Positions 10,781-64,000 of a stretch of 64,000 bases of DNA are shown piece after piece. The DNA is taken from positions 186,001-250,000 of the IMG/VR virus record IMGVR_UViG_3300050120_000230; one strand, written 5' to 3'. The notes under the pieces are model-generated. The model did no database searches and had not been told where the DNA came from. It saw only the letters and a program-made list of their open reading frames with translations. The position numbers were made by a program, and so were the translations under genes. Every line of letters starts with the position of its first letter. The stretch's first letter is position 1.

Positions 10781-11185
10781 ATGCGCGCGCGAGAAATCTT
10801 CGAGGCCCCGGAACAACTGCGTCTCTCGATAGAGCGCACCAGCGACACTGCATGGCTCATCACGGCGACCATGGGAGATGAACTGGCGGGAACACTGAGC
10901 ATTGCCCCATCCCGCTCTGGCTACGGCCTGCCGGGCAGCTATTCTGTCATGAACGTCGGCGTGAACCCGCAATATCAGCGCAAGGGCATCGCCACGGCCA
11001 TGTATGATTTCGCCTACAAGAAGGGTTTCGCGCCCTTGACGCCTGATCCGAAGCAATCGCCGGACGGGCAGGCATTCTGGGCGAGGGCATACGAGAAAAA
11101 GCTGAGACTCGGTAAACCGCGTCCGACCCATGAGTGGGGCAAACTTCGTGGTTTCCGCAAGCCTCGCAATGGGCCGCCGGAATGA
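10781..11185 (+). CDS. GNAT-family acetyltransferase with capsid-targeting-like N-terminus
   Basis: VGVNPQYQRKGIATAMY (GNAT motif A, QRKGIA); starts MRAREIFE; TAAATA 4 nt upstream. Confidence 0.8.
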   Translation: MRAREIFEAPEQLRLSIERTSDTAWLITATMGDELAGTLSIAPSRSGYGLPGSYSVMNVGVNPQYQRKGIATAMYDFAYKKGFAPLTPDPKQSPDGQAFWARAYEKKLRLGKPRPTHEWGKLRGFRKPRNGPPE

Positions 11186-12228
11186 AGCTCTTCGAAGTCC
11201 ACAAGCAGGGCCAGACGTTCTACGAGACGGATCACCGGTATCTCTACCACCTGACCGATCATCACGGGTTCGCTTACACCGTGGATCAAAACGCGTTGCG
11301 CGCAATGCGACAGGGCTACGTCAGCACGACGTATGATGCCAACAAGAACGGCGTTTTCGGTTACTCGCATTACGACTTCAAGTTCGTGCTCGACGGCAAG
11401 GCGCTCGTGTCAGAATACGGCGGTTTCAACTACGACCACCACATCATGGTCGGCGACGCAAAGAACATCGAGTCGTTGGATGAACGCGAGATCGGTATCG
11501 AGACGGGCGAGATTGAACCGTTCAGCCAATACCTTCTCGGCACCCAACTTCTGTTCCCGATTTTCAGTCAGAAATCTATCCAATGGCTGCTCTACGACAA
11601 CAAGGAAATGTCGGGATGGGGCACGAAGCGGACGCAGGCTCCGCGCACCATCGAGACGCTCTACAAGGTCATGGTCGAGTGGAAGAAACCGATCTGGGTC
11701 TACGACACCAAACCGCGCAAAATGAACGCCCACGAGATGCAATTCATCGAAGATGTCCTGAAGCTCCACAACGCCGGTGCGAACTTCGACGAGGGGATGC
11801 GAGAGCTTTCCGCGAAATACCCGATCAAGGATCACTGGGACAAAGATTTGGATCGCCGGATGGTGGAACGCCGCCAGCAATCCGAGGTGATCTACAAGGC
11901 CCTGAACAAATATTATCAGGGGCGCCCATACCAGAAGGTGGACACGAGCGTCGTTCGCAATCTCATCACCAAAGCGATCAATGTGCTCGGGCTCGGGAAC
12001 AACATCGAATCTGTTGTGCTTGGAGCAATTGAAGAGCAGGGCTTGTTCCACCAGATGATGGCCCCTGTGGATTGGGGAATTATCCTCAAGCCGCTCATGG
12101 ATGGCGATGTCGAGGACGCTCTAGAGCATATCCAGTGGACCGGCCGTGAGAAGGCCAGCCACAAGCGTCGATATGATGCCGACCCGGAACAATTTGCCTA
12201 TTCGAACCACGTTGGAACGCGTTTCTAA
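11182..12228 (+). CDS. ADP-ribosyltransferase-like protein (putative)
   Basis: YLYHLT, YVSTTYD and DEREI resemble the H-S-ExE ART triad; starts MKLFE. Confidence 0.5.
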   Translation: MKLFEVHKQGQTFYETDHRYLYHLTDHHGFAYTVDQNALRAMRQGYVSTTYDANKNGVFGYSHYDFKFVLDGKALVSEYGGFNYDHHIMVGDAKNIESLDEREIGIETGEIEPFSQYLLGTQLLFPIFSQKSIQWLLYDNKEMSGWGTKRTQAPRTIETLYKVMVEWKKPIWVYDTKPRKMNAHEMQFIEDVLKLHNAGANFDEGMRELSAKYPIKDHWDKDLDRRMVERRQQSEVIYKALNKYYQGRPYQKVDTSVVRNLITKAINVLGLGNNIESVVLGAIEEQGLFHQMMAPVDWGIILKPLMDGDVEDALEHIQWTGREKASHKRRYDADPEQFAYSNHVGTRF

Positions 12229-12246
12229 TTTTTGGTTAACGAGATT

Positions 12247-12275
12247 TTGACTTCAGTGCGATACCTGCCTATTGT
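12247..12275 (+). promoter_or_regulatory. sigma70-type promoter of the OMP gene
   Basis: TTGACT-N17-TATTGT. Confidence 0.6.
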
Positions 12276-12327
12276 GCGGAGATCGGGCGGTGACGCCTGA
12301 ATTTCACTGAAGGAAGACAAAAAAACT

Positions 12328-12867
12328 ATGAAGCAATTTATTGCGACTTTGGCCGCTGTGGCGGCTTTCGCGGTTGCCGGTTCGGCTGCTGCGGCTTCTC
12401 CGGTTGCGGGCTATTACGTCCAAGGCTCCGGTGGTCAGAACTACCAATCCGACCGTGACAGCGGCACTGCCCTGTCCGCGTCGTTCGGCAAGGACTTCGG
12501 CAAGGTCCGGGTTGAAGGCGAATACCTCGCGACTCGCGGCACCAACTCCGCGACGCTCGGCGACACTGCCGCCAACCTCGTGAACGCCAACGTGTTCTAT
12601 CAGCCGATCACGTTCGCGAACATCACCCCGTTCATCGGAGCGGGCGTCGGTTACGGCGAACTGTTCCGCAGCGGCGTGGTGGGTGACCAAAATGGCGTCG
12701 TGTTCAACGGCACCGTGGGCGTCTCCTATCCGATCAGCGGCAAGCTGAGCGCGGTTCTGCAATATCGTGAGTTCCTCGCGAACTCGATCCAGTTCCGCAA
12801 GGCTCCGGGCAACACCGACAACTACAAGGCGTCGGTTGCCACCATGGGTCTGCGCTACACCTTCTAA
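12328..12867 (+). CDS. 8-stranded outer-membrane beta-barrel protein (Omp25/RopB/opacity-like)
   Basis: signal peptide ending AAA; amphipathic strands RVEGEY, PFIGAGVGY; C-terminal GLRYTF BAM signal. Confidence 0.85.
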   Translation: MKQFIATLAAVAAFAVAGSAAAASPVAGYYVQGSGGQNYQSDRDSGTALSASFGKDFGKVRVEGEYLATRGTNSATLGDTAANLVNANVFYQPITFANITPFIGAGVGYGELFRSGVVGDQNGVVFNGTVGVSYPISGKLSAVLQYREFLANSIQFRKAPGNTDNYKASVATMGLRYTF

Positions 12868-12894
12868 GGTTAACGCCCCATTGAAGTAGTTATG

Positions 12895-12929
12895 AGGGGC
12901 GGGGGCAAGTTCTCCCGCCCCTTTTTCTT
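12895..12929 (+). terminator. intrinsic terminator
   Basis: AGGGGCGGG.../...CCCGCCCCT stem followed by TTTTCTT. Confidence 0.8.
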
Positions 12930-12937
12930 GACACGAC

Positions 12938-14155
12938 ATGGAACTCTTCTATGGTGTGTCGTATACAGTCTCGGAGGCTCACTTGCCAGAACCGCTCTTG
13001 TTCGGGATCATTTTGATCCCCGTCGCGATTTCGTTGTTCTGCAAGTATGCCTTGCGGTTCGAGATTTCGTGGCTCGAATTCGCCGCGCAACTGGTGATTG
13101 GTTTCTGCGTCTTCAGCCTGATTTGGGCTGTCGGTCGCTACTCGGCCGCCGGAGACACCGAAATCCTCAATGGCACGGTGCAGTCGAAGAACGCATGGCG
13201 TTTCTCCTGTCCGACCAACACCAGCAATCCGTGCCGCAACGGCTATTCCTGCCACTCGCACCAAGTCTGCTCGACCGTTGGTAGTGGCAAGGACGCCCAT
13301 GAGTCGTGCCATGAAGAGCACGATACCTGCTACGAATACGACTGGGAGCAGAACTGGTATGTGAAGTCGAACGTGCCGACCGCTTCCGAGATCGAGATCA
13401 AGCGCGTGGACGCGCAGGGCGCCTATATGCCGCCGCGCTACGACAAGGTTCAGGTCGGCGACCCGGTCTCCGGCACACATGCCTACAAGAACTGGGTGAA
13501 GGCTTCGGTCAACTCGCTCTTCAAGGAAGATGCGGGCAAGGACGAGACCTACAAGGCGCTGATGAAGCCCTATCCCATCGGCATCGTCGATTACTACAAC
13601 ATCGACCGGATCGTGACGCCCAATTTCCCGCTCGCCAACAAGCAAGCTTGGAACTGGGAACTGTCCAAGATGCTGGGCAAGCTCGGCCCGAGCCGTCAGA
13701 TGAACATGGTGGTGGTCATCGCCAACAACGTTCCGCGCGACTACGCCTATGGCGTTCGTCGTAGCTGGCAGGGGTTCAAAAAGAACGACGCGATCATCGT
13801 GATCGGCCTGCAAAATGGCAAGGTGTCGTGGGGCGAAACGATGTCGTGGTCGAAAAACTCGATCTTCAACATCGAAATGCGTAATATGGTGACCGATCTG
13901 CAAGGGACGGACATCAATGCGGTGAACCCCGCGACGTTCTTCGCCAACGTTCAGACGATCTCCACCAAGGACTTCGTCCGCCGCCCGATGAAAGAATTCG
14001 AGTACCTCAAGGGGGACATCCCGCCGCCGGTTTGGTTGATCGTCCTCTCCGTCATTCTCGCCATCCTGTTTGGCGTGGGAACCAGCGTGCTTTTCAACAA
14101 CGTCGATCTTGACGCCGCGATCTTCTCCGGCCGTCGCAACCAGAATTGGAGCTAA
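12938..14155 (+). CDS. membrane protein with TPM-like domain
   Basis: two N-terminal and one C-terminal TM helix; Cys-rich loop; SWQGFKKNDAIIVIG resembles the TPM W-x-G-K...N-G-hydrophobic motif. Confidence 0.6.
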   Translation: MELFYGVSYTVSEAHLPEPLLFGIILIPVAISLFCKYALRFEISWLEFAAQLVIGFCVFSLIWAVGRYSAAGDTEILNGTVQSKNAWRFSCPTNTSNPCRNGYSCHSHQVCSTVGSGKDAHESCHEEHDTCYEYDWEQNWYVKSNVPTASEIEIKRVDAQGAYMPPRYDKVQVGDPVSGTHAYKNWVKASVNSLFKEDAGKDETYKALMKPYPIGIVDYYNIDRIVTPNFPLANKQAWNWELSKMLGKLGPSRQMNMVVVIANNVPRDYAYGVRRSWQGFKKNDAIIVIGLQNGKVSWGETMSWSKNSIFNIEMRNMVTDLQGTDINAVNPATFFANVQTISTKDFVRRPMKEFEYLKGDIPPPVWLIVLSVILAILFGVGTSVLFNNVDLDAAIFSGRRNQNWS

Positions 14156-14157
14156 CT

Positions 14158-14784
14158 TTGTCCGACACCACCGCAACTCGTTCGGGGCCGAACGGCCTCA
14201 TCATCGGCCTCTGCGTCGCCGCAGCCGTCGTGGCCGTGCTCTTCGTCATGCTGTTCAGCAGCTACACCGGCGCCGTCGCCTATGGTGCTCAGTCCGAGCA
14301 GCAGATCAACGCGACGTGGGAGAACAACAAGCAAATCCTCGGGACCTACACGACCAAGATCGGCGAAATGGCCCAAGTCCCCGGCATGGCTCGCGGCGAC
14401 CTTCAGAAGGTCATCCAGACCAGCATGTCGGCGCGCTACGGCGAGGATGGGTCCAAGGCCACCGTGCAGTGGATTCACGAGAACTATCCGGGCTCCGTTG
14501 ACCCCGCGCTTTATCGCAACATCCAGACCGCTATCGACGCGGGCCGTACCGACTTCTCGGAGAACCAGAAGCGCCTTCTGGACCAGAAGCGTGAATACCA
14601 GACCCACCTCGCCTACGTGGTGCAGGGGTTCTGGCTGCACGCCGCTGGCTATCCGAAGATGGACCTGAACAAGTTCAACGTGGTCACCTCGACTTCGGCC
14701 GAACACTCGTTCACCACCGGCGTCGATGACGGCGTGAAGCTGCCGAGTTCCGACCCGGCGCCTGCGGCTCCGGCCAGCAAGTAA
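14158..14784 (+). CDS. LemA-like membrane-anchored helical protein
   Basis: TTG start 6 nt after GGAG; single N-terminal TM then helical EQQINATWENNKQIL segment; adjacent to the TPM-like gene. Confidence 0.55.
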   Translation: MSDTTATRSGPNGLIIGLCVAAAVVAVLFVMLFSSYTGAVAYGAQSEQQINATWENNKQILGTYTTKIGEMAQVPGMARGDLQKVIQTSMSARYGEDGSKATVQWIHENYPGSVDPALYRNIQTAIDAGRTDFSENQKRLLDQKREYQTHLAYVVQGFWLHAAGYPKMDLNKFNVVTSTSAEHSFTTGVDDGVKLPSSDPAPAAPASK

Positions 14785-14811
14785 GCGTTCACCCATCGGC
14801 AATACTGGGAG

Positions 14812-14836
14812 AGGCGGGGCATGTCCCCGCCTTTTC
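14812..14836 (+). terminator. intrinsic terminator
   Basis: AGGCGGGG-N5-CCCCGCCT followed by TTTCT. Confidence 0.8.
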
Positions 14837-14843
14837 TATTTGG

Positions 14844-14871
14844 TTGACGAGAATCACTTCTGGGGTAAACT
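14844..14871 (+). promoter_or_regulatory. early/host-type promoter
   Basis: TTGACG-N16-TAAACT. Confidence 0.65.
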
Positions 14872-14904
14872 GTAGGCATAAGGGAACAACCCGGAGGCAC
14901 AACT

Positions 14905-15342
14905 ATGACCGAGCGCATGACTTTCACCACCGTCAATGGCTACAAGGCTTCCGCTGCGGATCAGGTCGATACCATCCGCAAGCTTCTCGAAGGCTTCGGC
15001 TCCATCGCCTACATGTCCGGCACGCGCGGCATCGAAATGAAGCTCGGCGCCGAAATCAACATGCGTCTGGCCATCCTTCACAATCTGTTCGCCCGCATGA
15101 CGGTCGCTGACCAGATCGACGAAGAAGAACTCGAAGGGAAGGGCGCGCGCATCGACCGCCTCGACAAGCAAGGCCGCGAAGTTCTCCGCGAAGAACTGGC
15201 CTTCATCGCCGGGACCGTCAACGACCCCTATCTCTACGCCTCGGAACCGGTCAACTACCAGCAGGCCGCCGTCATCAACCTCCACAAGGCCCGCGACATC
15301 CTCGCCTATCGTGTGGAACGCAACACGCGCGACCCGGCCTGA
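14905..15342 (+). CDS. hypothetical protein
   Basis: GGAGG RBS; 145 aa; strong codon bias. Confidence 0.75.
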   Translation: MTERMTFTTVNGYKASAADQVDTIRKLLEGFGSIAYMSGTRGIEMKLGAEINMRLAILHNLFARMTVADQIDEEELEGKGARIDRLDKQGREVLREELAFIAGTVNDPYLYASEPVNYQQAAVINLHKARDILAYRVERNTRDPA

Positions 15343-15524
15343 TGCGTCGCGAAGTCGTAACCGTGGGGGCGCTTTTGCGTCGTGGCTTCCGGCGAATGCT
15401 GGACCAAGAGGGTGTTTCCTATTCGGAAGACAGGGGGTTCCTCGACAGCCAGTTCATCGTCAAGGGTGAACCCGAGGCGATGGCCCGCGTCGAAAAGCGC
15501 ATCAAGGACACGCTCGGGAAATGA
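15342..15524 (+). CDS. small hypothetical protein
   Basis: TGATG coupling; 60 aa. Confidence 0.65.
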   Translation: MRREVVTVGALLRRGFRRMLDQEGVSYSEDRGFLDSQFIVKGEPEAMARVEKRIKDTLGK

Positions 15525-16090
15525 AGGCCATTTCCAAAGCCATCAAACGCGTTGAGGTAAAGGCCACCATCGAACGCAAGTATGAGGTGGTTCTCACGAA
15601 CAGCGAGAACCAGACCATTTGCGCGCTGCTGACCAATTCGCTCCGCGAGGCCCTCACCGAGGCAGCGGAGTGGGCCGACTTCTGTGGCATCGTTCTAACG
15701 CCGTATCGCGTCATGGGTAAGATCGTAGAGCCGGTCACCAAGGACACCTACAAGCAAACCACGCTCAAGACGTTCGCGCAGCTTCATGCGGAATATCGGA
15801 CGAGCGGTGGCGAACTGAATTGGAACAAGCTGATGCATTGGGAGTGGCAACGCTTCCGGGGCACCTACAAGGACAAGGAAGCCATGAAGTTGTGGCTCCT
15901 GCCGCATTTCATGGAGAGCAAGCCGCCGACGTTTGATGAGGCGGTGGCCCGTGCAGGGACCAAAGACTCCCCGGCCGTCGAATGGCTGAGCGCCAACGCC
16001 ACGGGCTCGTGGATGCCTTCCAAGGGCGGCTATCGGTTCTCCGATGATCGAGATGCCGCTCTGTTCAAACTGTTTTTCGCTGGAAACTAG
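15521..16090 (+). CDS. hypothetical protein, FKL-motif family
   Basis: ends YRFSDDRDAALFKLFFAGN. Confidence 0.7.
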   Translation: MKAISKAIKRVEVKATIERKYEVVLTNSENQTICALLTNSLREALTEAAEWADFCGIVLTPYRVMGKIVEPVTKDTYKQTTLKTFAQLHAEYRTSGGELNWNKLMHWEWQRFRGTYKDKEAMKLWLLPHFMESKPPTFDEAVARAGTKDSPAVEWLSANATGSWMPSKGGYRFSDDRDAALFKLFFAGN

Positions 16091-16099
16091 GAGGATCGC

Positions 16100-16489
16100 A
16101 TGTTCGAGATTCACGGCGAGGCCGATTCGAAAGTTCTCTACGATCTGTGCACCGAGCTTGGCGCGGATTACCGCAAGACCGCCGTCGTGCCGCTGGCGAG
16201 CGACATTGACACACGCATCGCCGCCGCACTGGCCGTGCCTGTGGCGCCCTACGCCAACTCCTTGGAAGCGGCTTTCGCGTTGAGGGACATCGTTTTCCCG
16301 AACGTCGAATATCTGAACGTGGATTTTCGCGAATATTTCTATGCGGATCACGGCATGTCCTATCATTGTGACGTGCGACATGAATACGGAGAAGGCTGCG
16401 GCCGGGGCTCCACCCGCGCCCGCGCGCTGGTGTGCGCTATCCTGATGCACGTCATCTATGCGTTGGATGAGCAACGGACTTCACGCTGA
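16100..16489 (+). CDS. hypothetical protein
   Basis: AGGAGG RBS; 129 aa. Confidence 0.7.
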   Translation: MFEIHGEADSKVLYDLCTELGADYRKTAVVPLASDIDTRIAAALAVPVAPYANSLEAAFALRDIVFPNVEYLNVDFREYFYADHGMSYHCDVRHEYGEGCGRGSTRARALVCAILMHVIYALDEQRTSR

Positions 16490-16911
16490 TGTTCTACGAG
16501 AAGGCCCTGCGTGGCCTCTCCATCGATGAGATGCAAAAGCTCATCAACATCATCGTAGCCGAAGGTCAGCGAAGCCAACCCCTCCTGACCGACTACGGGA
16601 AGATTACCAACGACGTTGTGTGGCTGCATAGCATCATGGGTATCGCGTTGCAGTTCACCTACCACAAGGGCAACGTGAACGTGCCGTCGTTCCGTCTAGA
16701 GGGTTCAGAGTGGGCGATCACTTTCAAAGGGTCGCGAAGCTCATCGCTGATGCCGCGCTTTCACGATTACATCGAAATCAGGATCGGGCCTCTGGAACGT
16801 ACCATGCGTCCGCCGCCCACCGCGACTAAGTTTTTCGCGCACCAATTTCGGCGGCGTGGTAAACTGTCGGACTTCAAGCACGACCTGACTTTGCTGAGGC
16901 TGACCCTGTGA
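16489..16911 (+). CDS. hypothetical protein
   Basis: TGATG coupling; ends SDFKHDLTLLRL, similar to the end of 9989..10528. Confidence 0.65.
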   Translation: MFYEKALRGLSIDEMQKLINIIVAEGQRSQPLLTDYGKITNDVVWLHSIMGIALQFTYHKGNVNVPSFRLEGSEWAITFKGSRSSSLMPRFHDYIEIRIGPLERTMRPPPTATKFFAHQFRRRGKLSDFKHDLTLLRLTL

Positions 16912-17538: not shown

Positions 17539-17540
17539 CG

Positions 17541-17916: not shown

Positions 17917-17917
17917 C

Positions 17918-18502: not shown

Positions 18503-18508
18503 GGCATG

Positions 18509-22172: not shown

Positions 22173-22249
22173 AAGACCAATACTGAAAGCTTTGTGGGGG
22201 TATTTATACTCGCACAAAACCACAACCTTTCGTCTCAAATAAATATCGG

Positions 22250-22846
22250 ATGCGCTATCACGAGATCATCAGAGAAGACACCGCCGTAGACGGCTTGATG
22301 AGCTATTGGGACCTCGTGGATTACTATGATTTGAAGGACGCTGCCGACAAACTACACGACGCATCGCTTCCATGGATTAATCGTAATGCGACTTCAGCAA
22401 TCGCCCGGCTCGCCACCAACAAAAAGATGCGTCTGCTCTCAAAGTTGAAACTATTTTGCTCCCTAGAAGGTCCGCGCAGCTATAGCGACAAATGGACGAC
22501 CCCCGAGGTGTTCGAGCACGTCTTGCACCAGCCCGTGACCATGTGGCGCGGCGGTGGTGGGGTCTACGATCCCAATTATGCCTACCCTCTGCCGTGGACG
22601 AGTTTCACGGTGAAGGAAGCCCGTTCGGAAACATTTTCGAAATATGACGGCACCCGCGCAACGCGAACTTTCAGGCTGCCACTCCGCGATCAATATTGGA
22701 TAATCAAGCTGACGATTCCCCTCGACAGCATTTTGCTTTATCTGCCCCACGGCTCGGATGAAGAAGTGATCGTCAGCACAGAGATCGCACGCGCCGCCGA
22801 ACTCGTTACCCAGACCAATACCGGGATGGCCAATGAGGTATCGTGA
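22250..22846 (+). CDS. ADP-ribosyltransferase-like protein (R-S-E type)
   Basis: MWRG, WTSFT, SDEEVIV; starts MRYHEIIRED; TAAATA 4 nt upstream. Confidence 0.6.
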   Translation: MRYHEIIREDTAVDGLMSYWDLVDYYDLKDAADKLHDASLPWINRNATSAIARLATNKKMRLLSKLKLFCSLEGPRSYSDKWTTPEVFEHVLHQPVTMWRGGGGVYDPNYAYPLPWTSFTVKEARSETFSKYDGTRATRTFRLPLRDQYWIIKLTIPLDSILLYLPHGSDEEVIVSTEIARAAELVTQTNTGMANEVS

Positions 22847-24071
22847 ACTCGTTGAGAGCCGCTCGGCTCCGCTCTACCACATCATGGAGTTCAAGAAGGC
22901 GATCAGCGTTTTCGAAGCAGATATGATGCCCGCCCGCTGGGAGCACTTGGTGCCGAAGATCGGCAAGCTGCTCGGGAACAGTTTCACCCGCAACAAAGAA
23001 TTCAAGAACCGGCTCGTGCGGATCACCGTTGACCAAGCCAGACTGGCACATACCCATCGCATCATCCCGGTCGATGGCGAACGCATTTTCATGCACACCA
23101 CGAAGAGCGCCGAAGACCCGACACCGGAGCGTGGTGAACTTTCTCTCGGCCGCCGAGGTGACCGCGATATGAACACCACACCACTCGCCGAAGAGTTCGT
23201 GGTCGGCGACATCAAGCAGCTTCACCGGTTCATCACCAAGATTGAAATCGGCACACCCAATTTCTCGGTTATCTCCGGCGCCAACGCCATTCACTTGTTG
23301 GAAACCACACAGGCATATGCCGCAAAATACGGTATCGAACTGGTCGTTTCCCAGCGGTTCATCGACAACGTGGAAGAGATCAAGCAACGGTGGGCCGATG
23401 AGGCTGCCGAAGACGAACTTGATGAGATGGCGCCGACCGATCAAATGCGCTCGACCACGTTCTACCATGGCACTGGCGGGACTGTGAACGCCAAGGCTAT
23501 CATGAAGCAGGGCCTCAAAGGGCGTGAGACGCAGGGCAAGAGTCACTTGGCCCCGGTCGCAGGTAAAGCCTATCTGTCGCAAGACCTACGCTATGCGATC
23601 ATCTATGCGCTCGGTGGAGACTATCTAGGCCATGCCACACCGAAGTTCGCCACCGAAAGCGGCGATCCGTATGGCTATCTGTTCGTGGTCAAGGGTGACA
23701 GCTTGGAGACGGCCCAGCCGGATGAAGACTCTGTCGGACAGTTCCTCTACGATTTCTATCACAAGTCCAAGGATGAGCAGATGGCTGATCCGCACGGCGT
23801 CTCAGTGGCGACTTTCATCGCCCAGTCTGTCACGGACGGCCAGCGCCGCGCCATTCGCGATGGAGAATACTCCTACTTTGCGGCCGGTGGGAAACGTGCT
23901 CTCAAGAAAATGCCAGATTGGATCAAAGAGTATCTGATAAAGCACGGCGCGCATGTTGCGGCGACTGGCAAGCTCATGCCGTCAGAAGTCTGGCGGATCG
24001 ACCGTCGCAAATCGGACAAGCTGGCCAAGGATGGTTCCAATTTCTTCGAGATCGCCAAACGAGTGAAGTGA
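22833..24071 (+). CDS. tandem ADP-ribosyltransferase-like domains
   Basis: domain 1 PLYH/NSFTR/AEEFV; domain 2 FYHGT/AYLS/YAIIYA; starts MRYRELVES; internal LDE-M junction. Confidence 0.6.
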   Translation: MRYRELVESRSAPLYHIMEFKKAISVFEADMMPARWEHLVPKIGKLLGNSFTRNKEFKNRLVRITVDQARLAHTHRIIPVDGERIFMHTTKSAEDPTPERGELSLGRRGDRDMNTTPLAEEFVVGDIKQLHRFITKIEIGTPNFSVISGANAIHLLETTQAYAAKYGIELVVSQRFIDNVEEIKQRWADEAAEDELDEMAPTDQMRSTTFYHGTGGTVNAKAIMKQGLKGRETQGKSHLAPVAGKAYLSQDLRYAIIYALGGDYLGHATPKFATESGDPYGYLFVVKGDSLETAQPDEDSVGQFLYDFYHKSKDEQMADPHGVSVATFIAQSVTDGQRRAIRDGEYSYFAAGGKRALKKMPDWIKEYLIKHGAHVAATGKLMPSEVWRIDRRKSDKLAKDGSNFFEIAKRVK

Positions 24072-24110: not shown

Positions 24111-24404
24111 TCAGTCAGCGAAAAAATAGTGCCGGTTGGTGTCCTGATCGTAGATGATGTAGACACCATCGGCTTCTAGAAACTCGCACTCATGGCCGTC
24201 GATTTCTTGCTCAATATGTTCGTCCGGTGGGACGTTGGCATAGAACTCGTTCTCGGTGATGTGCTCTGCCTGTTGATCCGCGTATTGGAAGTCTTCTTCC
24301 GTAGCCCACGGCAGTTCGGGAACAATGCACCGTCCGGCATCGTCGAATGACGTAACGCACGTTCCAACGCAGTGATAGCCTTCTGCGATGATGACCGTCC
24401 TCAT
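24111..24404 (-). CDS. acidic hypothetical protein
   Basis: 97 aa; TAATG coupling. Confidence 0.65.
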   Translation of the reverse strand: MRTVIIAEGYHCVGTCVTSFDDAGRCIVPELPWATEEDFQYADQQAEHITENEFYANVPPDEHIEQEIDGHECEFLEADGVYIIYDQDTNRHYFFAD

Positions 24405-26188
24405 TAGAGCATGGTCATCAGCTTACGCCAGTTGTCCGTCAGACGCAGATCGAAGCACTGCTGGACAAGGCGGAAGTTGACCTGACGCTTGAGCTTGCCG
24501 GTCGTGTAGAGTTCGCGCAGATAGTCCATGACTTCCTGCTTCATTTCGTCGGTCAGACCGGGCGTCTTGATGTGTCCCTTGATCTTGTCGATGTAGTCCA
24601 ACATGTCAGCCGACGAGAAGTTCATGTTGATCGAGAAGGCGCGCGTCAGAATCGCGCTGTCCCACTCGGACTCATCCATGTTGGAAATGAAAATGATCCG
24701 GCCACGGAAGTCGATCTTGTTCGGAAGGTGACGTTCCAGATAGGCTTGTGTCTTCAGCAACAGGTTGTAGCTGTAGCGATACTTGCCGGTGCCGCCTTCG
24801 GCCTCGTCACCTTCCGGGGTTTCATCGTCATCGGGGATGTCGTCGAAGTCATCTTCATTCTTGCTGTTGATGACGTAGCGTTCGAACGTTTCCAGATCGC
24901 CTTCTTCGGGCTTGCCGCGCAGGATGCGGGAAATCTTCTCGACGTAGATGTCACGTTCTTTGGGTTCGAGAACGCCAGTGTTGATGGTGCCGCGAACGTC
25001 ATATGAGATTTCGCGAACAGGATCGGTGTCAAGCGCGCCCTTGAGCATGTTGACGGCGTTCTTGTCGTCCACGACGCTGTCGCAGTCATCGAAGATGACC
25101 ATGCCGTCGATCTGTTCGATCAGCGTGCGATAGAGGGCGACCGTGGTGATACGGCCCTTCTTGACGATGTAATTGACGCCGGGCTTCAGACCAAGTTCGT
25201 TGATCGTCTTCATGACGACGAACGTCTTACCCGATGACGGGGCGCCGGTGATGAGCAGGGACTTGATGAAGTTCGATTCGCCACCGGCGACCAGCTTCAC
25301 CTTGTCGTGCAGCATGTCATATTGTTCATCCATGCTGTCGCCCTTGCCACCGGTGGTTTCAAGTTCACGACCCAACATGCGCTCAAGCTGAGCAGAATAG
25401 TCTTCGAGACCGGGGATGCGGAACCACGCGCCCTTGGGTTTGCGGCCCATCAGATAGATTTTGCCCTGACCGGCAAGGCGGCGGACGGTCTTGGCCTTGG
25501 CCAGCGCCAAAGCATCTTGATAGGCCGGATCGACGGATGCGTCAGGCGCCTCGACCGGACCACCCATGGCTTTGCCAAGTTCGGTGTCGGTCTGATCGGG
25601 TTCACCAGCACCGTGACCGGAAAGGTTCCAGTGGTGGGCGTCCACTTTGTATTCGTTGCCCATGCGAACGTCGCCGGGAATTTGCACTTCGTTTTCGGCC
25701 GCCAGAGCCATCATCTGAGGCATCGTGATCTTGGACGCGCCAGCGTCGCCGAACTTGGCGACGGCCATACGCATGAACTCTTGGGCGTTCGAACGTCTCG
25801 CCATTTCATCGAGTTCGACGCTTTCGTTCACTTCGCCCTCTTTGCCAACGCTGGGATGATTGATCCATTCAGCGACTTGATCTGCCATTTGCAGGAAAGA
25901 ACCTGTCACAGGAATATCCAGAACATAGTCCGGTTCACGGCTGATGTCGAACTGTTCCCAGACATAAATGCTGTCAACTCCAATGGCGCCAGTCGAACGC
26001 GACCAAGCAAGACCAATGGCCTTGGTAGAGTTGCCGAGAACGTAAACAACACCAAGATGATCTTCGCCAAGTTCGTAGACGCGCTTCGGACCACCGACGC
26101 GTTCAAGTTGACCCAGCTTGTTTTGCAGGATGTTAGCCACGCTAAGCGGGAGACGAGAACTGTCACCTTGGAATTCAACTAGACGCAT
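24404..26188 (-). CDS. AAA+ ATPase with long N-terminal extension
   Basis: GAPSSGKT, VIFDDCD, IIFISN sensor 1, LTRA arginine finger; starts MRLVE; TAAATA at 26220-25 (minus). Confidence 0.85.
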   Translation of the reverse strand: MRLVEFQGDSSRLPLSVANILQNKLGQLERVGGPKRVYELGEDHLGVVYVLGNSTKAIGLAWSRSTGAIGVDSIYVWEQFDISREPDYVLDIPVTGSFLQMADQVAEWINHPSVGKEGEVNESVELDEMARRSNAQEFMRMAVAKFGDAGASKITMPQMMALAAENEVQIPGDVRMGNEYKVDAHHWNLSGHGAGEPDQTDTELGKAMGGPVEAPDASVDPAYQDALALAKAKTVRRLAGQGKIYLMGRKPKGAWFRIPGLEDYSAQLERMLGRELETTGGKGDSMDEQYDMLHDKVKLVAGGESNFIKSLLITGAPSSGKTFVVMKTINELGLKPGVNYIVKKGRITTVALYRTLIEQIDGMVIFDDCDSVVDDKNAVNMLKGALDTDPVREISYDVRGTINTGVLEPKERDIYVEKISRILRGKPEEGDLETFERYVINSKNEDDFDDIPDDDETPEGDEAEGGTGKYRYSYNLLLKTQAYLERHLPNKIDFRGRIIFISNMDESEWDSAILTRAFSINMNFSSADMLDYIDKIKGHIKTPGLTDEMKQEVMDYLRELYTTGKLKRQVNFRLVQQCFDLRLTDNWRKLMTML

Positions 26189-57749: not shown

Positions 57750-57757
57750 GACGGCTT

Positions 57758-57790: not shown

Positions 57791-57815
57791 TCAGTAAGAT
57801 TTTCGGAGACCCGTC

Positions 57816-58625: not shown

Positions 58626-59510
58626 ATGAGCGGCGTCGTGGGTTACGAATACGAACTCAAAGACACGCTCTTGGACGTGCGCGACGTGAGCATGGTCTAT
58701 GGAGACAATGTCGTCCTGCGTGATGTGAGTTTCCAGATCAAAGATATCGTCCGGCCGGGTAAAACACAGGGTCAGGTCAATGCTTTGCTGGCGCCCTCCG
58801 GCACGGGGAAAACTCAGCTATTTCGATGTATCGCTGGGCTCCAAGTTCCGACCAACGGTGAAGTTTTCTTGAACCGCCATGATTGCACCGCTGATGGCAA
58901 AGCCGTCGTGGATGACAAGGGCCAGCCAATTTTGAAGCCGGTGACAGTTGGGTCAGTCGGCGTGGTTGCACAGGACTATCCGCTGTTCAATCACCTGTCC
59001 GTCTGGGACAATCTGATGATGGCGGCCGAAATCAAGATGAACAAGGCCGCCGCCACAGAAAAAGTCGAAGCGTTGCTTCAACGTTTCGGTCTCTCCGAAC
59101 GACGCACGTTCTATCCGCAGGCGCTTTCTGGCGGCCAGCGGCAACGCGTGGCGATCATCCAGCAAATGGTCTGCAATGGTAAATTGCTGCTGATGGATGA
59201 ACCATTCTCCGGTCTCGATATCATCATGAAGGAAGAGGTGCAGAACCTCATCTCCGACGTGGCCGCGTCCGACGAGTGGAATTCTGTCATCGTCACGACC
59301 CATGACATCCAAAGCGCCATCGCCGTGGCCGACACGATTCTTCTGTTGGGCAAAGAACGCAAGCCCAACGGTGAGATCGTCCCCGGCGCCTACATCAAGC
59401 ACACCTACAATTTGATGGACCTTGGGCTGACTTGGCACCCGGATATCGCTTCTCTTCCGGCATTTGCCGAACTTGAACGCGAAATCAAGGCGCGGTTTAG
59501 GGAACTGTGA
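58626..59510 (+). CDS. ABC transporter ATP-binding protein (SsuB/TauB-like)
   Basis: APSGTGKT, Q-loop VAQD, LSGGQRQR, LLMDEPFSGLD and TTHD. Confidence 0.93.
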   Translation: MSGVVGYEYELKDTLLDVRDVSMVYGDNVVLRDVSFQIKDIVRPGKTQGQVNALLAPSGTGKTQLFRCIAGLQVPTNGEVFLNRHDCTADGKAVVDDKGQPILKPVTVGSVGVVAQDYPLFNHLSVWDNLMMAAEIKMNKAAATEKVEALLQRFGLSERRTFYPQALSGGQRQRVAIIQQMVCNGKLLLMDEPFSGLDIIMKEEVQNLISDVAASDEWNSVIVTTHDIQSAIAVADTILLLGKERKPNGEIVPGAYIKHTYNLMDLGLTWHPDIASLPAFAELEREIKARFREL

Positions 59511-59758
59511 TGGATTACGAAACGGTCGTTCGAGCGAGTTTGGCCGGGACGCTCATTCTCGTCACCATAACGTTGGCCATCATGTTCGCAGATTGGTGGC
59601 GGCGGGGCCGCAGTAGTCATTGGGTTACGGTGGCTCAAATCGACGGCATCGTCTATCAACAACACAAAACGCGCCCCGAATGGCGGCGATGGTATCCGAC
59701 TTTCAGTGGATACCGGGTGCGGATCGACTGGATCAAGGGCAGAACCGACAAGCTCTAA
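59507..59758 (+). CDS. small membrane protein
   Basis: one N-terminal TM helix; GTGA overlap. Confidence 0.55.
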   Translation: MMDYETVVRASLAGTLILVTITLAIMFADWWRRGRSSHWVTVAQIDGIVYQQHKTRPEWRRWYPTFSGYRVRIDWIKGRTDKL

Positions 59759-59827
59759 TCCATTTTCGTTGACGAAATTATAATCTGGGGGCATGATGCT
59801 TGTAACAAAACAAGCACGAGGCACCCC

Positions 59828-60373
59828 ATGACCGACCGTTTCACGCGTCCCCAAACCGAATTGCTTCGTTCTCTCGACGAAGAGCCCGGTGTATGGGCCG
59901 AGTGCAACGAAAGCGAATGGCGGACTGCCGTGTCGCTGCAAAAGCGCGGCCTCGTCGAACTTGATCGCGATCCGAGCGACCATTCGCCTCGTCGTTTCGA
60001 TGCGCGCACCACTTCGGTCAGCCCGAACTACAACAACGGTGTTCGAGACATTCCCTACGACAAGCACGTCTTCGTGCTTGCACGGCCGATCAAGGGCGAC
60101 TGGAAGGAATACGACGGTTCGACCAGTGCACGCGGTCGCCAAGAGTTCCGCCCCTGCATGATCCAAGGCCACGACGGCGGCCAGCGCCTCTATGTGATCG
60201 GCAGCCAATACGCCTACGATCTGACCAAGTTCGAAATCCGCGAATTCGAAGCGTTCTCGGCCAAGCCGGTAAAGGACGATTTGCTGCACAAGCTGCTGGT
60301 CAATGGCGAGGCCGATGCCGAAGAACAGGCGGATGCGGCGAACTGGATTGGCCGTCTGGCGGGACAAGCCTGA
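59828..60373 (+). CDS. hypothetical protein
   Basis: GAGG RBS; TTGACG-N17-CATGAT promoter at 59769. Confidence 0.7.
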   Translation: MTDRFTRPQTELLRSLDEEPGVWAECNESEWRTAVSLQKRGLVELDRDPSDHSPRRFDARTTSVSPNYNNGVRDIPYDKHVFVLARPIKGDWKEYDGSTSARGRQEFRPCMIQGHDGGQRLYVIGSQYAYDLTKFEIREFEAFSAKPVKDDLLHKLLVNGEADAEEQADAANWIGRLAGQA

Positions 60374-60591
60374 TGGCTGGTCTTCGTCGTCTTGCAAAGA
60401 TGTTCGGCGGTCTCACCGCAATCAGCACCAATCCGGTCACCGGGGAAGTGACGAAGGTCGAACACGTTTGGGACTACGTCGCCGATGAACCGACCACTAG
60501 CGACGAGATGCCTGTGGGTTCTGAAAGATGGAAGGCGTCTGAACGCGTGAAATGGGCTAATGTCGGTGGCGGCGAAGACAAATTGATCTGA
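60373..60591 (+). CDS. small hypothetical protein
   Basis: TGATG coupling; 72 aa. Confidence 0.6.
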   Translation: MAGLRRLAKMFGGLTAISTNPVTGEVTKVEHVWDYVADEPTTSDEMPVGSERWKASERVKWANVGGGEDKLI

Positions 60592-60611
60592 GTCGTGAAG
60601 CCGACATTTAC

Positions 60612-60639
60612 TTGACGGAAATTGGTTTGCGAATAAGCT
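60612..60639 (+). promoter_or_regulatory. early/host-type promoter giving a leaderless argS mRNA
   Basis: TTGACG-N16-TAAGCT, ATG 7 nt downstream, no SD. Confidence 0.6.
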
Positions 60640-60646
60640 GCACCGT

Positions 60647-62236
60647 ATGGACATTCTAGAGCAACTTTTGAGTCAGGCATTCGCCGCCGAAGGTTTGGAC
60701 CCCGCACTTGCTGTGGTGTCGCCTTCGGAGCGGCCGGACCTTGCCGATTTTCAATCGAACGGAGTGTTTCTAGCGGCCAAGGCTGCGCGGATAAATCCTC
60801 GGGCTCTGGCCGAGCGGATCGTTGAACGGCTCAAACACCCAGACATCACGTTCGAAGTAGCCGGGCCGGGCTATATCAACATGACGCTGGGTCCGGCTCT
60901 GCTCGAAAAGATGCTGCTGGACAACAGTCCGATCCCACAGGTTTCCGGTCGGATCGTGTTGGATTTCGGTGGACCGAATGTCGCCAAGCCGATGCATGTG
61001 GGTCATATGCGGTCTCTGGTGATCGGTGACGCCCTTCAACGGATTTTGCGGTTCGTGGGCTACGAGGTGCTGTCCGACATCCACCTCGGCGACTGGGGCC
61101 TCCAAATGGGCCTGTTGCTGGCGGCCTTGGAAGGCACACCGCTACATGACTACAATATCGCGCTGTTGGAAAAAACCTATCCACAGGCGGCGGCTCTTGC
61201 CAAAGAGGATGAACCCTTCCGGTTGAAGGCACAGATGTTCACGCGCCTACTGCAACAAGGTGATCCCGAGCTTATGCAGCGGTGGCGGAAAATGGTCTGC
61301 GTGAGCATGACCACCGTCAATCGGGAGCTTGCTGCTCTGAAAGTCAATTTCACTCTCATGAAGGGTGAAAGTGACGTTCAGGACTTGATCCCCGATATGA
61401 TCGCGAGCTTCGTCGCCAAAGGGATCGTAGAGGAAGACAACGGGGCGCTCGTCGTCCGGGTTGGAGAACCTCCACTCATCCTGCGGAAGTCGGATGGTGC
61501 GGCTCTCTATTCCACGACCGATCTCGCGACGATCCTTGATCGGAAGGCAGCCTTCGATCCCGACAAGATCATCTATGTGACCGATGAACGGCAGCAACTT
61601 CACTTCAAGCAGGTTTTCGCGGCGGCCGAGATGGCTGGTTATCTGAACGGCAAGCTCGAACTCGAACACATCTGGTTCGGGACGGTGAACGACGCCAATG
61701 GCAAGCCACTCAAGACGCGGGCTGGTGGTGTGCCGAAGTTGCACGACCTGATCGAAGAAGCGATCACCAAGGCGTCCGAGAAGAATGCTGAATCGGCGAT
61801 CCCGGTGGCTATGGCGGCGTTGAAGTTCGCCGATCTACAAAACCCTCGGACAGGGTCGTATTCTTTCGATCTCGATAAGTTCCTGAGCTTCGAAGGCAAG
61901 ACCGGCCCATATCTGCTCTATCAAGCGGTGCGGATCAAATCCATCCTCGTCAAGTCGGTTGAACCCGGCCCGATTACGCTTGAGACCGCACAGGAGCGGG
62001 CTCTTGCGTTCAAGCTGGTGTTCGGTTTCCGGCAGGCGCTCGATGGCGCCGTGCGGCGATTGTCGCCCAAAGAGATCGCCGATCACGCCTACGATCTCGC
62101 GCAATCCTTCTCGAAGTATTATGCGAACACGCAGATCGGAGAATCACCGTCGAGGGTGGCCCTCTCTGCCAAGGTGTTGGCCCAACTGGAATGCTGCTTG
62201 GGTCTGATGGGTATCGATATCCCCGAGCGGATGTGA
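60647..62236 (+). CDS. argS: arginyl-tRNA synthetase
   Basis: N-terminal add-on domain (ADFQSN, VAGPGYIN), PNVAKPMHVGHMRS HIGH motif, GDWGLQMG, KSDG..LY.TTDLA, EGKTGPYLLY and DALR-type anticodon domain. Confidence 0.95.
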   Translation: MDILEQLLSQAFAAEGLDPALAVVSPSERPDLADFQSNGVFLAAKAARINPRALAERIVERLKHPDITFEVAGPGYINMTLGPALLEKMLLDNSPIPQVSGRIVLDFGGPNVAKPMHVGHMRSLVIGDALQRILRFVGYEVLSDIHLGDWGLQMGLLLAALEGTPLHDYNIALLEKTYPQAAALAKEDEPFRLKAQMFTRLLQQGDPELMQRWRKMVCVSMTTVNRELAALKVNFTLMKGESDVQDLIPDMIASFVAKGIVEEDNGALVVRVGEPPLILRKSDGAALYSTTDLATILDRKAAFDPDKIIYVTDERQQLHFKQVFAAAEMAGYLNGKLELEHIWFGTVNDANGKPLKTRAGGVPKLHDLIEEAITKASEKNAESAIPVAMAALKFADLQNPRTGSYSFDLDKFLSFEGKTGPYLLYQAVRIKSILVKSVEPGPITLETAQERALAFKLVFGFRQALDGAVRRLSPKEIADHAYDLAQSFSKYYANTQIGESPSRVALSAKVLAQLECCLGLMGIDIPERM

Positions 62237-62496
62237 TGCGCTGGTTCTGGGAAATGCTCTATCGCCGCCAAGCGGTAGAGGTTGTCCTTGATCGAGATTG
62301 CATCAGAGTTCTCGGCGGTGATGGTCCCACGACCTTGGCCAGACTACGAGATGTCGAGCGCGAATGGTGTCGTCACAACGTTCGCAGGCCATTCGGTCTA
62401 TATTGCCGATGGCGAGGCGTAGGGGGCGGATACCATGCGTATCTGTGGTTCATTGAGCCGAAAGATGCTGCACTCTTCAAAATGTTTCAAACGTGA
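62236..62496 (+). CDS. hypothetical protein, FKL-motif family
   Basis: ends LWFIEPKDAALFKMFQT. Confidence 0.65.
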   Translation: MRWFWEMLYRRQAVEVVLDRDCIRVLGGDGPTTLARLRDVEREWCRHNVRRPFGLYCRWRGVGGGYHAYLWFIEPKDAALFKMFQT

Positions 62497-62513
62497 CGTG
62501 TCCTAAATAGTGG

Positions 62514-63650
62514 ATGCGTGAGTTCATCAATCTCCTAGAGCAAGCCGACAACGTCACGCTCTATCGCGGCGACAGCGGCCCTGTGGAGAAGTTCGAACTG
62601 GCCAAGACCGATTCAGGAGCTTTGCTCGGCATCGGCATCTATCTCACCGATAGCCCGGAAGTGGCTGGCGACTATACCGTCAAGGGTTCCCAAGACATCG
62701 CCTATCCGTCAGGGCGCCGGGGCGAAGACAATTCGTTCAACGATCCGAAGCAATTGACCGCTGGGTATCTGCGGAAACTCATGAACGATGCTGGTTTCCA
62801 ACAGCAAATGGACGACACGAAAAATCAGTGGCAGGACAAATATTACAGCCTGTCGCGAGATATCGATTGGACCGACCATGAACGTGCTCGTAAGGAGCGC
62901 GACGAAATGCAAGCCAAGTTCCAAGCGGACTATCAGGTCGTCCGATCCAAGATGATCCGCGCCGCCGTGGCCAAGGCCAAGGCACAGTTCAAGGCGATTC
63001 GACCGAACCTACGGATGGTCAAGCTGACCACTGGGGAATACATCTTCACGAAAGTTGGCCGGGCGGCCAGCATCGCGAAGTTTATCGTGCCTACGGCCTA
63101 CCTCGAACGATGCCTTCATGCTGAGCGGCCTCTGCCTGATGATCTTCTTCCGATCATGAAAGCGGCTTTCGCTCGTGTGGCTCATGACAAAAACCCCGAT
63201 CAAAAATGGGACCTACGGGTTCGGAATCCCAAGGGGAACAACGGCGACGAAGACATTGGCCTTTCATTCGATGAGTTCATCGCAGGCTTTCGTAAAGCGG
63301 GCGCTCGCTACGCGTGGACGGACGAAGTTCGTGGCGGCAAGGGTGAGAACCCTTCGCTCGACATCCTCTGGAACGGCACGCACAGCGGCTATCACGTCTT
63401 CCAGAACAAAGAAGCACAAGAGACCCTCATGCATGAACTCATGGCCATGGGCTACGTCGGCTACGCCTACGACGGCGGCGTTCGTCTAGCTGGCACCGGT
63501 GCTCGTGGTGGCGGTGGCATTCGTCACAACGCCTACGTTCTTTGGGACGAAAATGCCGTTCATTCTTTCCGCGTCGAGGGCGGCGGGGTGACTGATGACG
63601 AAGTCGGTGACTTGGAAAAAGGTATCAAGGCAGCAAAAGTCCTGCGTTAA
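62514..63650 (+). CDS. ADP-ribosyltransferase-like (polyvalent-protein ART type) late protein
   Basis: TLYRGD, GIGIYLTD..EVAGDY; starts MREFINLLE; TAAATA 4 nt upstream. Confidence 0.6.
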   Translation: MREFINLLEQADNVTLYRGDSGPVEKFELAKTDSGALLGIGIYLTDSPEVAGDYTVKGSQDIAYPSGRRGEDNSFNDPKQLTAGYLRKLMNDAGFQQQMDDTKNQWQDKYYSLSRDIDWTDHERARKERDEMQAKFQADYQVVRSKMIRAAVAKAKAQFKAIRPNLRMVKLTTGEYIFTKVGRAASIAKFIVPTAYLERCLHAERPLPDDLLPIMKAAFARVAHDKNPDQKWDLRVRNPKGNNGDEDIGLSFDEFIAGFRKAGARYAWTDEVRGGKGENPSLDILWNGTHSGYHVFQNKEAQETLMHELMAMGYVGYAYDGGVRLAGTGARGGGGIRHNAYVLWDENAVHSFRVEGGGVTDDEVGDLEKGIKAAKVLR

Positions 63651-63664
63651 ACACTAAATAGTTC

Positions 63665-64000
63665 ATGTTTTCGATGCGTGAACTGATGTTGATGGTCGAA
63701 ACCGAGCGTCCGAGAGAAGGGCCGCCGGTTCCCGACACGTTGTTCCATGGCACCGGTGAAGAAGCGTGGAATAGCATCCAAGAGAGCGACACCATGTATT
63801 CGTCGGATCACAGAGACGAAGACGCTATTTCCTTCACCACCGATTGGCACACTGCAAATCGCTTCGCACAAGCCGTAGCCAAGCGAGAGGGCGGCGCCGG
63901 AGTCATCATCGAGTTCAACGGTGACGATCTGGCTCGCAAGTTCAACGTCGAGCCATTTTCAGATAGTGGGCTGGTTCACGCCGAACAAGAATGGCTAGTC
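63665..64000 (+). CDS. ADP-ribosyltransferase-like protein, 3'-truncated by the window edge
   Basis: own translation: MFSMRELMLMVE...LFHGT...ISFTTD...AEQEWLV; TAAATA 63655-60; not in the ORF track. Confidence 0.6.
   Translation, partial: MFSMRELMLMVETERPREGPPVPDTLFHGTGEEAWNSIQESDTMYSSDHRDEDAISFTTDWHTANRFAQAVAKREGGAGVIIEFNGDDLARKFNVEPFSDSGLVHAEQEWLV

Follow-up and report, generated by a model that had tools for sequence, protein, structure and literature searches.

The Alt protein and the internal proteins of phage T4 are made late in infection, enter the prohead and leave the particle along with the DNA, and Alt is a NAD-dependent modifier. Among enzymes with the ADP-ribosyltransferase (ART) fold that act on nucleic acids, DarT, the DNA ADP-ribosyltransferase of the DarTG system, is a host defense toxin that, like Scabin and pierisin, targets DNA bases, and Tpt1/KptA acts on the 2'-phosphate of RNA as well as on 5'-phosphate ends. 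Here we analyze five dispersed genes for ART-like proteins, denoted P0001 to P0005, in bases 186001-250000 of the IMG/VR virus record IMGVR_UViG_3300050120_000230, and propose, with a probability of roughly 0.6, that they encode late-made, probably virion-borne ARTs, the substrates of which would be nucleic acids or proteins of the host as infection begins. ARTs are present in more than 40% of jumbo phages, with at least 10 in Bacillus phage G, and are often packaged in the phage head (PMC9503650). The capsid-targeting sequence of T4 IPIII comprises its first 10 residues, and the protease gp21 cuts after L/I-X-E (PMC9026906); the address of the internal proteins and that of Alt are removed by gp21 alike (PMC9026906, PMC3012670). 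The prohead proteases of giant phages are very divergent (PMC9026906).

The record, from a soil or peat jumbo phage of at least 415 kb, is 415,409 bp long and an estimated ~72% complete, with a G+C content of ~55% throughout; among public runs, the sequence was located in a single one, a DNA metagenome from peat, with no RNA run listed, and megablast against GenBank phages gave zero matches to the region. Hereinafter, the window denotes the whole analyzed stretch of 64,000 nucleotides; the coordinates of P0001-P0005 are those of the window, and paralogs outside it are given in the coordinates of the whole record. The five genes are the following:

11182-12228, plus strand: P0001, 348 aa
22250-22846, plus strand: P0002, 198 aa
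22833-24071, plus strand: P0003, 412 aa
62514-63650, plus strand: P0004, 378 aa
63665-64063, plus strand: P0005, 132 aa in full; the part in the window is 63665-64000, and the last 63 nt lie past the window end

All five open reading frames (ORFs) that a first-pass annotation of the sequence had proposed as ART-like are present at these positions, and the motif triplets on which that proposal was built are found where they had been placed and are invariant or nearly invariant within the homologs of each protein. The same annotation had described an arsenal extending across 11182-64000; the dispersed genes are real, with the ART-like part amounting to only ~4.3 kb of this span and the rest being mostly unrelated (arginyl-tRNA synthetase, virion proteins). 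By BLAST among the ORFs of the genome, P0001-P0005 are not close paralogs of each other. They keep the same order of elements, namely, [H/R], then [S/Y]-x-[S/T], then an acidic residue, the respective residues being invariant or at least 90% conserved per family (the homologs in the conservation counts share 30-80% identity). The motifs exceed chance because these residues are conserved family-wide and three of the domains fold as ARTs.

The structural evidence comes from AlphaFold2 (AF2) models that were built for P0001 and P0003 from homolog alignments (pLDDT 91.9 and 88.7, respectively) and that encompass three ART-like domains:

11203-11703, plus strand: N-terminal ART-fold domain of P0001, residues ~8-174, motifs H23 / S48-T-T / E101-x-E103
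22845-23357, plus strand: N domain of P0003, residues 5-175, motifs H16 / S50 / E120-E121
23424-24068, plus strand: C domain of P0003, residues 198-412, motifs H212 / Y247 / D297-E298-D299

Residues 8-174 of P0001 align with the NAD lobe of yeast Tpt1 at VIA Z=10.4 (117 of 120 residues, 2.5 A), and the next structural matches are human and archaeal Tpt1/KptA, DarT, Scabin, Tne2 and pierisin; neighbors in AFDB and the ESM Atlas include 2'-phosphotransferase, DUF2971, Tox-ART-HYD1 and DarT. We identified 28 homologs of this protein, and H23, S48-T-T, E101 and E103 are at least 90% conserved across the 29 sequences. The C-terminal domain of P0001 (residues 181-348, ~170 residues) is helical and gave no informative match.

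P0003 is a tandem protein, both halves of which resemble ARTs. The N domain aligns with the NAD lobe of yeast Tpt1 at VIA Z=10.0 (112 of 120 residues, 2.8 A) and with DarT at Z ~8; for the C domain, the VIA Z scores are ~8 with KptA/Tpt1, 7 with the TreX/TreTu Rhs toxins, 6.8 with pertussis S1 and 6.4 with PARP16. When P0003 was compared to the PDB using Foldseek, nearly all of the top 50 matches were ARTs (DarT, Tpt1/KptA, CARDS, cholera, LT, pertussis S1), and when 48,161 representative chains were scanned without recourse to Foldseek, ART folds occupied all top 14 ranks and dominated the remainder. Among the 129 homologs, H16, S50 and E120-E121 of the N half are kept in all 10 full-length ones, and in the C half, H212, P241, D297 and D299 are invariant, with Y247 and E298 at least 90% conserved. 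The first-pass annotation had taken 'YA' as the third motif of the C half, which is wrong; the conserved acidic element is D297-E298-D299. The two halves are linked by hhalign at the His motif (E=2e-4); other hhalign comparisons between the families were mostly insignificant, bar those of P0005 (see below). Searches of PDB sequences with phmmer and with profiles yielded no significant match; the one exception was Tpt1, which the profile of the P0003 C-domain family matched around YHGT with E=0.016.

The placement of the motif residues in the models follows the fold. The canonical ART arrangement places the His where the first strand ends, the Ser or Tyr where the second one ends and the acidic residue at a later strand. 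In the P0001 model, H23 lies at or next to the end of the first strand and S48 at or next to that of the second one, E103 starts a later strand, and E101 lies just before it; in the P0003 model, H16 and H212 are at or next to the first strand end of their domains, S50 and Y247 at or next to the second one, and E120/E121 start a later strand. The structure search against ART folds that had been put forward as a check on the initial proposal thus returned the ART fold for the P0001 N domain and for both halves of P0003, and, on the strength of the models, these three domains almost certainly possess this fold, with its split beta-sheet, in the His-type, Tpt1/KptA-DarT-like variety. The nearest structures, Tpt1/KptA and DarT, act on nucleic acids and are not Alt-like protein modifiers.

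Homologs of the P0003 C domain include fusions to ART-PolyVal, NUDIX or GNAT. One such protein is gp205 (L005:3494-6055) of Tunturiibacter phage Tunturi_5, an isolated jumbo phage of Acidobacteriota, which is annotated as an ART toxin and combines, within 853 aa, a module similar to the P0003 C domain with a C-terminal GNAT domain. Considered along with the GNAT gene next to P0001 (see below), this domain composition suggests a recurrent partnership between ARTs and GNATs. A weak structural match was detected between P0003 residues 197-401 and chain B of PDB 9k3a, a pre-ejectosome protein of cyanophage A4 (Foldseek E=0.018, VIA Z=4.2), which hints at a possible ART-like module within the structurally characterized ejection apparatus of that phage.

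P0004 links the set to the ART-PolyVal family. Its predicted core is in two parts, N-terminal (residues ~14-60) and C-terminal (residues ~300-350), separated by a helical-looking insert of ~240 aa. Across 242 homologs, L16-Y-R18-G19-D20 and Y43-L-T45 are fully or almost fully conserved, with R18 in place of the usual first-motif His, and a conserved C-terminal block, GYVG...H338..YV.W344D, is the counterpart of the C-terminal half of ART-PolyVal. Against the Pfam hidden Markov model (HMM) of ART-PolyVal (PF18760), P0004 scores 19.2-21.7 bits (E=0.002; 6.8e-5 genome-wide), under the 31.2-bit cut-off. The P0004 family HMM matched the canonical ART-PolyVal gene at 106555-107604 of the record with E=3.6e-10 in two co-linear pieces, and in an hhalign comparison, the P0004 C-terminus matched the C-terminal half of the gene at 267428-268036 with E=0.003; side-by-side inspection shows three motifs that P0004 has in common with the canonical members, Y-[H/R]-G, G-x-G-h-Y-h-T and, towards the C-terminus, GY.G...h-V-h-h. 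These sequence relationships make it very probable that P0004 is a divergent relative of ART-PolyVal.

Some homologs of P0004 are parts of polyvalent proteins, 1,700-2,300 aa in length. Among homologs P0206, P0232 and P0245, P0004-like modules are found in fusion with both PARP and the anti-CBASS nuclease Acb1, in fusion with a poly(A)-polymerase head domain, and within a protein of 2,326 aa that matches ParB_N below the threshold. As far as domain matches can be read, the contexts of these fusions are those of counter-defense and of polyvalent proteins.

P0005 is much shorter, and only one distinct relative was found, under three records, in the scans of viral and metagenome sequences; in the conservation analysis, which counted two distinct relatives, the motifs H28-G-T / S56-F-T-T / E107-x-E109 are kept. 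The match to Pfam Tpt1/KptA is below the threshold (17.5 bits, E=0.0045; 15.5 bits in a second scan). In the hhalign comparison with the P0003 C-domain family (P=66%, E=5.6e-5), H28 of P0005 aligns with H212 and S56-F-T with Y-L-T; in that with the P0001 N-domain family (P=52%, E=1.5e-4), H28 falls on H23, and E107-x-E109 is paired with E101-x-E103. Because of these profile links to two modeled families and the sub-threshold Tpt1 match, P0005 is probably a minimal ART.

In P0002, R100-GGG, S118-F-T, D170 and E172 are invariant among the 16 homologs. The embedding neighbors in the Atlas include DRAT, ADPrib_exo_Tox and Mod_ADP_RT, with scores of 0.84-0.88 that are under the 0.9 reliability level and serve as leads only. 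A search of phages with P0002 using tblastn gave no match. On the basis of the WRG, SFT and D-x-E-V-I-V motifs, we lean slightly towards P0002 being an ART of the R-S-E type. Of the six ART domains that had been counted in the first-pass annotation, then, the case is strong for the three that were modeled, good for P0004 and moderate for P0005, and P0002 is assigned on motifs only.

The description of the set as expanded and diversified was correct and understated: outside the window, the record contains up to five further ART-like genes, three of which are firm, for up to ten in the genome, as judged from profile matches. In record coordinates, these are:

7264-7737: weak R-variant ART-PolyVal-like ORF
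106555-107604: canonical ART-PolyVal, PF18760 at 68.5 bits summed
267428-268036: canonical ART-PolyVal, PF18760 at 46 bits
309657-310229: paralog of the P0003 N domain, E=9e-6
369263-369913: ADPrib_exo_Tox (PF03496) gene, 25.4 bits; the protein starts with MFSMR like P0005

The HMMs for DarT, DRAT and PARP detected nothing across the genome.

Two features upstream of and at the start of the coding sequences connect the ART-like genes to each other and to virion genes. The first one is a promoter-like motif. The arrangement [C/A]TAAATA-N4-5-ATG, with C or A preferred just before the motif, occurs at 48 sites in the genome compared to 1-6 (~3) in block shuffles, and 45 of the 48 sites start ORFs of at least 60 aa. 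In the window, the sites are:

10771..10776, plus strand: TAAATA motif, 4 nt 5' of the ATG of a GNAT gene
20864, plus strand: TAAATA site
22240..22245, plus strand: TAAATA motif, 4 nt 5' of the P0002 ATG; conserved in a relative at ~60% protein identity
26505, plus strand: TAAATA site
30734, minus strand: TAAATA site
34184, plus strand: TAAATA site
62504..62509, plus strand: TAAATA motif, 4 nt 5' of the P0004 ATG
63655..63660, plus strand: TAAATA motif, 4 nt 5' of the P0005 ATG

The motif is thus directly 5' of P0002, P0004 and P0005, and precedes nearly all genes with the N-terminal tag described below. P0001 and P0003 begin within the stop region of a motif-bearing upstream gene, namely, the GNAT gene and P0002, respectively; the last 14 nt of P0002, with its stop, are shared with P0003, and this gene pair is kept in relatives, including one of 570 kb. 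The motif-bearing ORFs that lack the tag encode tail fibers, tail-fiber assembly and virion structural proteins; therefore, the element behaves as a putative late or virion-type promoter. The late promoter consensus of T4 is TATAAATA, which the TAAATA core resembles. The spacing between the motif and the start codon implies that the predicted mRNAs are leaderless or near-leaderless.

The second feature is a short, propeptide-like tag of ~5-12 residues at the N-terminus, M-R/K-x-x-E-I/L-I/L-x-E with variants, ending in [ILVM]-x-E. The initial reading of the sequence had ascribed such a tag to all five proteins, and it is indeed found on each of them: MRYHEIIRE in P0002, MREFINLLE in P0004 and MFSMRELMLMVE in P0005 are typical, as is MRDFINLVE. 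If the tag is defined as an initial basic residue with [ILVMF]-x-E after it, all by residue 14, it is present in 23 of the 45 motif-bearing ORFs vs 4.4% at internal Met. The tagged starts in the genome are:

10781, 20875, 22250, 22833, 62514 and 63665, plus strand of the window
30721, minus strand of the window
~16 ORF starts elsewhere in the genome

The codons of the tag vary, with Arg2 encoded by CGC, CGT, CGA or AGA; therefore, selection acts on the protein. The tag is kept in homologs from other phages, and the 570-kb relative retains both the tag and the promoter motif. In addition to the proteins discussed above, the tag is carried by a cell-wall hydrolase, a GNAT, the Alt-like ADPrib_exo_Tox ART and ART-PolyVal proteins; the majority of the tagged proteins have no known domain.

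Several genes in the immediate neighborhood of the ART-like genes are worth describing:

10781..11185, plus strand: GNAT acetyltransferase with the tag MRAREIFEA (Acetyltransf_1, E=5e-6)
24404-26188, minus strand: 594-aa ORF with a weak AAA_16 match, ~330 nt beyond the P0003 3' end
60647-62236, plus strand: complete arginyl-tRNA synthetase, just 5' of P0004 (tRNA-synt_1d, E=9e-78, with N-terminal and DALR domains)
62191-62496, plus strand: small ORF with a C-terminal D-A-[TA]-L-F-K-[ML]

The stop of the GNAT gene overlaps the start of P0001, which is translationally coupled to it, and the two genes likely form one operon, to judge from this overlap. The neighborhood of P0003 is conserved in the 570-kb relative, where a 591-aa gene is found at the position that matches the 594-aa ORF (L035:8046-9821). 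The C-terminal D-A-[TA]-L-F-K-[ML] is shared by three ORFs elsewhere in the record (251727-252035, 252032-252583 and 254303-254644, all on the minus strand), and these small ORFs appear to be a local paralogous family flanking P0004 and P0005.

Under the proposed scenario, the ART genes would be expressed from the TAAATA promoter, P0002, P0004 and P0005 directly, P0001 via the GNAT gene and P0003 via P0002, and, owing to the promoter common with virion genes, the proteins would be made late, along with the particle. Most likely, they would then be loaded into the prohead, the tag would be trimmed, and the proteins would be ejected together with the DNA. Early in the next infection, the enzymes would use host NAD+ to ADP-ribosylate host macromolecules. 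As prospective targets, nucleic acids (DNA bases, or RNA and DNA phosphate ends) are the most plausible ones for the Tpt1/DarT-like domains, and proteins perhaps for the R-type members. The fusions among the homologs (NUDIX, GNAT, PARP, Acb1) and the Tunturi_5 protein place these putative ART families in the biology of NAD/ADP-ribose conflicts.

Several observations weigh against this scenario. None of the five proteins scores above a Pfam threshold and none is represented in PHROGs, with two sub-threshold Pfam matches in all (P0004 and P0005). Likeness of fold alone is no proof of catalysis, and the third, acidic element of P0004 and that of the P0003 C domain are candidates that are not certain. 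For P0002, scans of all 16 family members against Pfam and PHROGs recovered no ART family, the profile search of the PDB was insignificant, and hhalign comparisons with T4 ModA, T4 ModB and the ADPrib_exo_Tox gene of this genome gave insignificant E values of 0.15-0.22, the local matches to ModA and ModB coinciding with the WRG and SFT motifs; the spacing of 18 residues between the Arg and the Ser is short. With regard to packaging, the ~72%-complete record contains no match to PF03420, T4 gp21, Peptidase_S77 or the T4-type portal (gp20), and the signal of a Gp23-type major capsid protein consists of two fragments, at 252032-252583 (minus strand) and 396617-397375 (plus strand), with 65.9 and 57.7 bits, respectively, the first one 2 kb past the window end and the second one 146 kb further; a full-length Gp23 was not found in the record. 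Possible explanations are a capsid gene that is split or duplicated in pieces, or a head module located in the missing part of the genome. The tag, too, might have a different role, in the translation of leaderless mRNAs or in some other localization. Injection is plausible, being circumstantially supported by the late promoter motif and the resemblance of the tag to a capsid-targeting sequence; by this analogy to T4, packaging of the ART-like proteins in the virion is a tentative proposition, at slightly worse than even odds.

The alternative that fares best is that the proteins are ART-fold enzymes that are not packaged and act late in the producing cell, on the ends of the phage's own DNA or RNA, in tRNA-type repair, or by consuming immune signals derived from NAD+ or ADP-ribose. 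The identity of the closest structures, an RNA 2'-phosphotransferase (Tpt1/KptA) and a DNA ART (DarT), is compatible with such a role, as are the fusions of homologs to NUDIX and Acb1, which degrade signals or ADP-ribose derivatives, the investment of this phage in translation genes, such as that for the arginyl-tRNA synthetase beside P0004, and the failure to find a prohead protease in the record. However, the modeled domains match the C lobe of Tpt1 only, without the RNA-binding lobe, and score below the Pfam thresholds for Tpt1 and DarT, whereas the [ILVM]-x-E tag, which is carried by the cell-wall hydrolase as well, and the virion-gene promoter point to the particle. We consider this alternative unlikely, albeit one to be taken seriously.

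Another, somewhat less probable, possibility is that some of the domains are catalytically dead and function as binding modules, decoys, inhibitors or chaperones, P0002 being the likeliest case and one half of P0003 a possible one. Immunity or partner proteins are commonly encoded beside ART toxins, as in the DarT-DarG pair, and P0002, which shows no detectable homology to ARTs, could be the partner or regulator of the tandem ART that is encoded next to it; the overlap of the two genes and their persistent pairing in relatives fit this arrangement, and such a role for P0002 may be regarded as a live alternative. The invariance of the R/S/DxE residues in the 16 homologs and motif shapes that fit R-S-E ARTs nonetheless argue for an active enzyme, and both halves of P0003 keep the H, S or Y, and acidic positions.

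It is rather improbable that the tag, instead of being a capsid address, merely arises from or assists the way in which translation starts on leaderless mRNAs. Although the tag does co-occur with the TAAATA-N4-5-ATG arrangement, and no protease that would remove it was found in the incomplete record, half of the ORFs with the same geometry, those for structural proteins, lack the tag, the codons of its conserved residues vary, P0003 is tagged without a TAAATA site of its own, and the tag is kept in homologs from other phages. Finally, the idea that the triplets arose by chance in unrelated hypothetical proteins, which could draw on the shortness of the motifs, their identification by eye and the lack of above-threshold Pfam matches, can be dismissed for four of the five genes, P0002 excepted, given the family-wide invariance of the motif residues, the ART folds of three domains and the profile links for two more proteins.

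A bolder extension of the proposed scenario, and one we hold to be doubtful, is that the tag, cut after [ILVM]-x-E, and the leaderless late promoters define a regulon of ~25 enzymes (10 or fewer ARTs, a GNAT, a cell-wall hydrolase and an HNH nuclease) that are loaded into the capsid in a peat and soil megaphage lineage, with the Tpt1/DarT-like members being offensive nucleic-acid ARTs that mark host DNA or RNA at injection. If true, this would be a phage-side use of chemistry that is known from the bacterial defense toxin DarT; more generally, modification of nucleic acids by the Tpt1/DarT-like domains would make them phage effectors, the chemistry of which has so far been characterized mainly in host defense (DarT) and RNA repair (Tpt1). 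The set adds ART sequence families that are not recognized by Pfam, including a tandem double ART, to the NAD/ADP-ribose repertoire of phages, and the P0003 C-domain family alone comprises more than 120 homolog clusters in metagenomes. The combination of promoter motif and tag would provide a simple rule for predicting the proteins of this lineage that travel in the capsid. The presence of many, often head-packaged ARTs in jumbo phages is already known (PMC9503650), and the regulon of leaderless late promoters and tags is the more original part.

Compared to the known ART families, the proteins described here show partial likeness to each. Tpt1/KptA is the best structural match of the P0001 N domain and of both P0003 domains (Z 8-10.4), and the HGT motif is common to them; however, only the NAD-binding C lobe aligns (residues ~84-186 or 101-230 of the Tpt1 chain), with no N-terminal RNA-binding lobe, the scores are under the 26-bit cut-off of PF01885, and the Ser/Tyr and Glu/Asp motifs are typical of transferases to other acceptors. 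DarT is the second-best match of the two N-terminal domains (Z 7-8 over ~130 residues), with the same order of H, aromatic residue or Ser, and E. Unlike in DarT and DarTG, no protein in the genome matches the DarT HMM (PF14487) at E<=10, the genes are phage-encoded and tagged, and there is no DarG-like macrodomain beside them, the neighbors being the GNAT, the AAA-like ORF and the arginyl-tRNA synthetase. Accordingly, with scores below the family thresholds and a different domain architecture, we reject the possibility that these proteins are true orthologs of Tpt1 or DarT. The similarity to ART-PolyVal (PF18760) consists in the motifs of P0004, the family HMM match at E=3.6e-10 and the fusion of the P0003 C-domain family to ART-PolyVal in other phages; P0004 differs in its score below the cut-off, Arg in place of His, the insert of ~240 aa, and its being stand-alone and tagged.

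The length of the tag and its [ILVM]-x-E end are as in T4 Alt and internal proteins, the TAAATA core is like that of the T4 late promoter (TATAAATA), and, as in the T4 late regulon, the TAAATA element is located 5' of virion structural genes. In contrast, none of the five window proteins matches Alt/VIP2 (ADPrib_exo_Tox), as only the gene at 369263-369913 does, and the modeled domains are of the His type, Tpt1/DarT-like, and not of the R-S-E type as in T4 Alt. The ART-rich jumbo phages, such as Bacillus phage G (PMC9503650), share with this phage a large myovirus-type genome and many diverse ARTs, several of them in contexts suggestive of head packaging. In the set described here, four of the five proteins match no ART family in Pfam or PHROGs, and the genes are tied together by the tag at the N-terminus and the late-type promoter of leaderless character, not by MuF or portal fusions.

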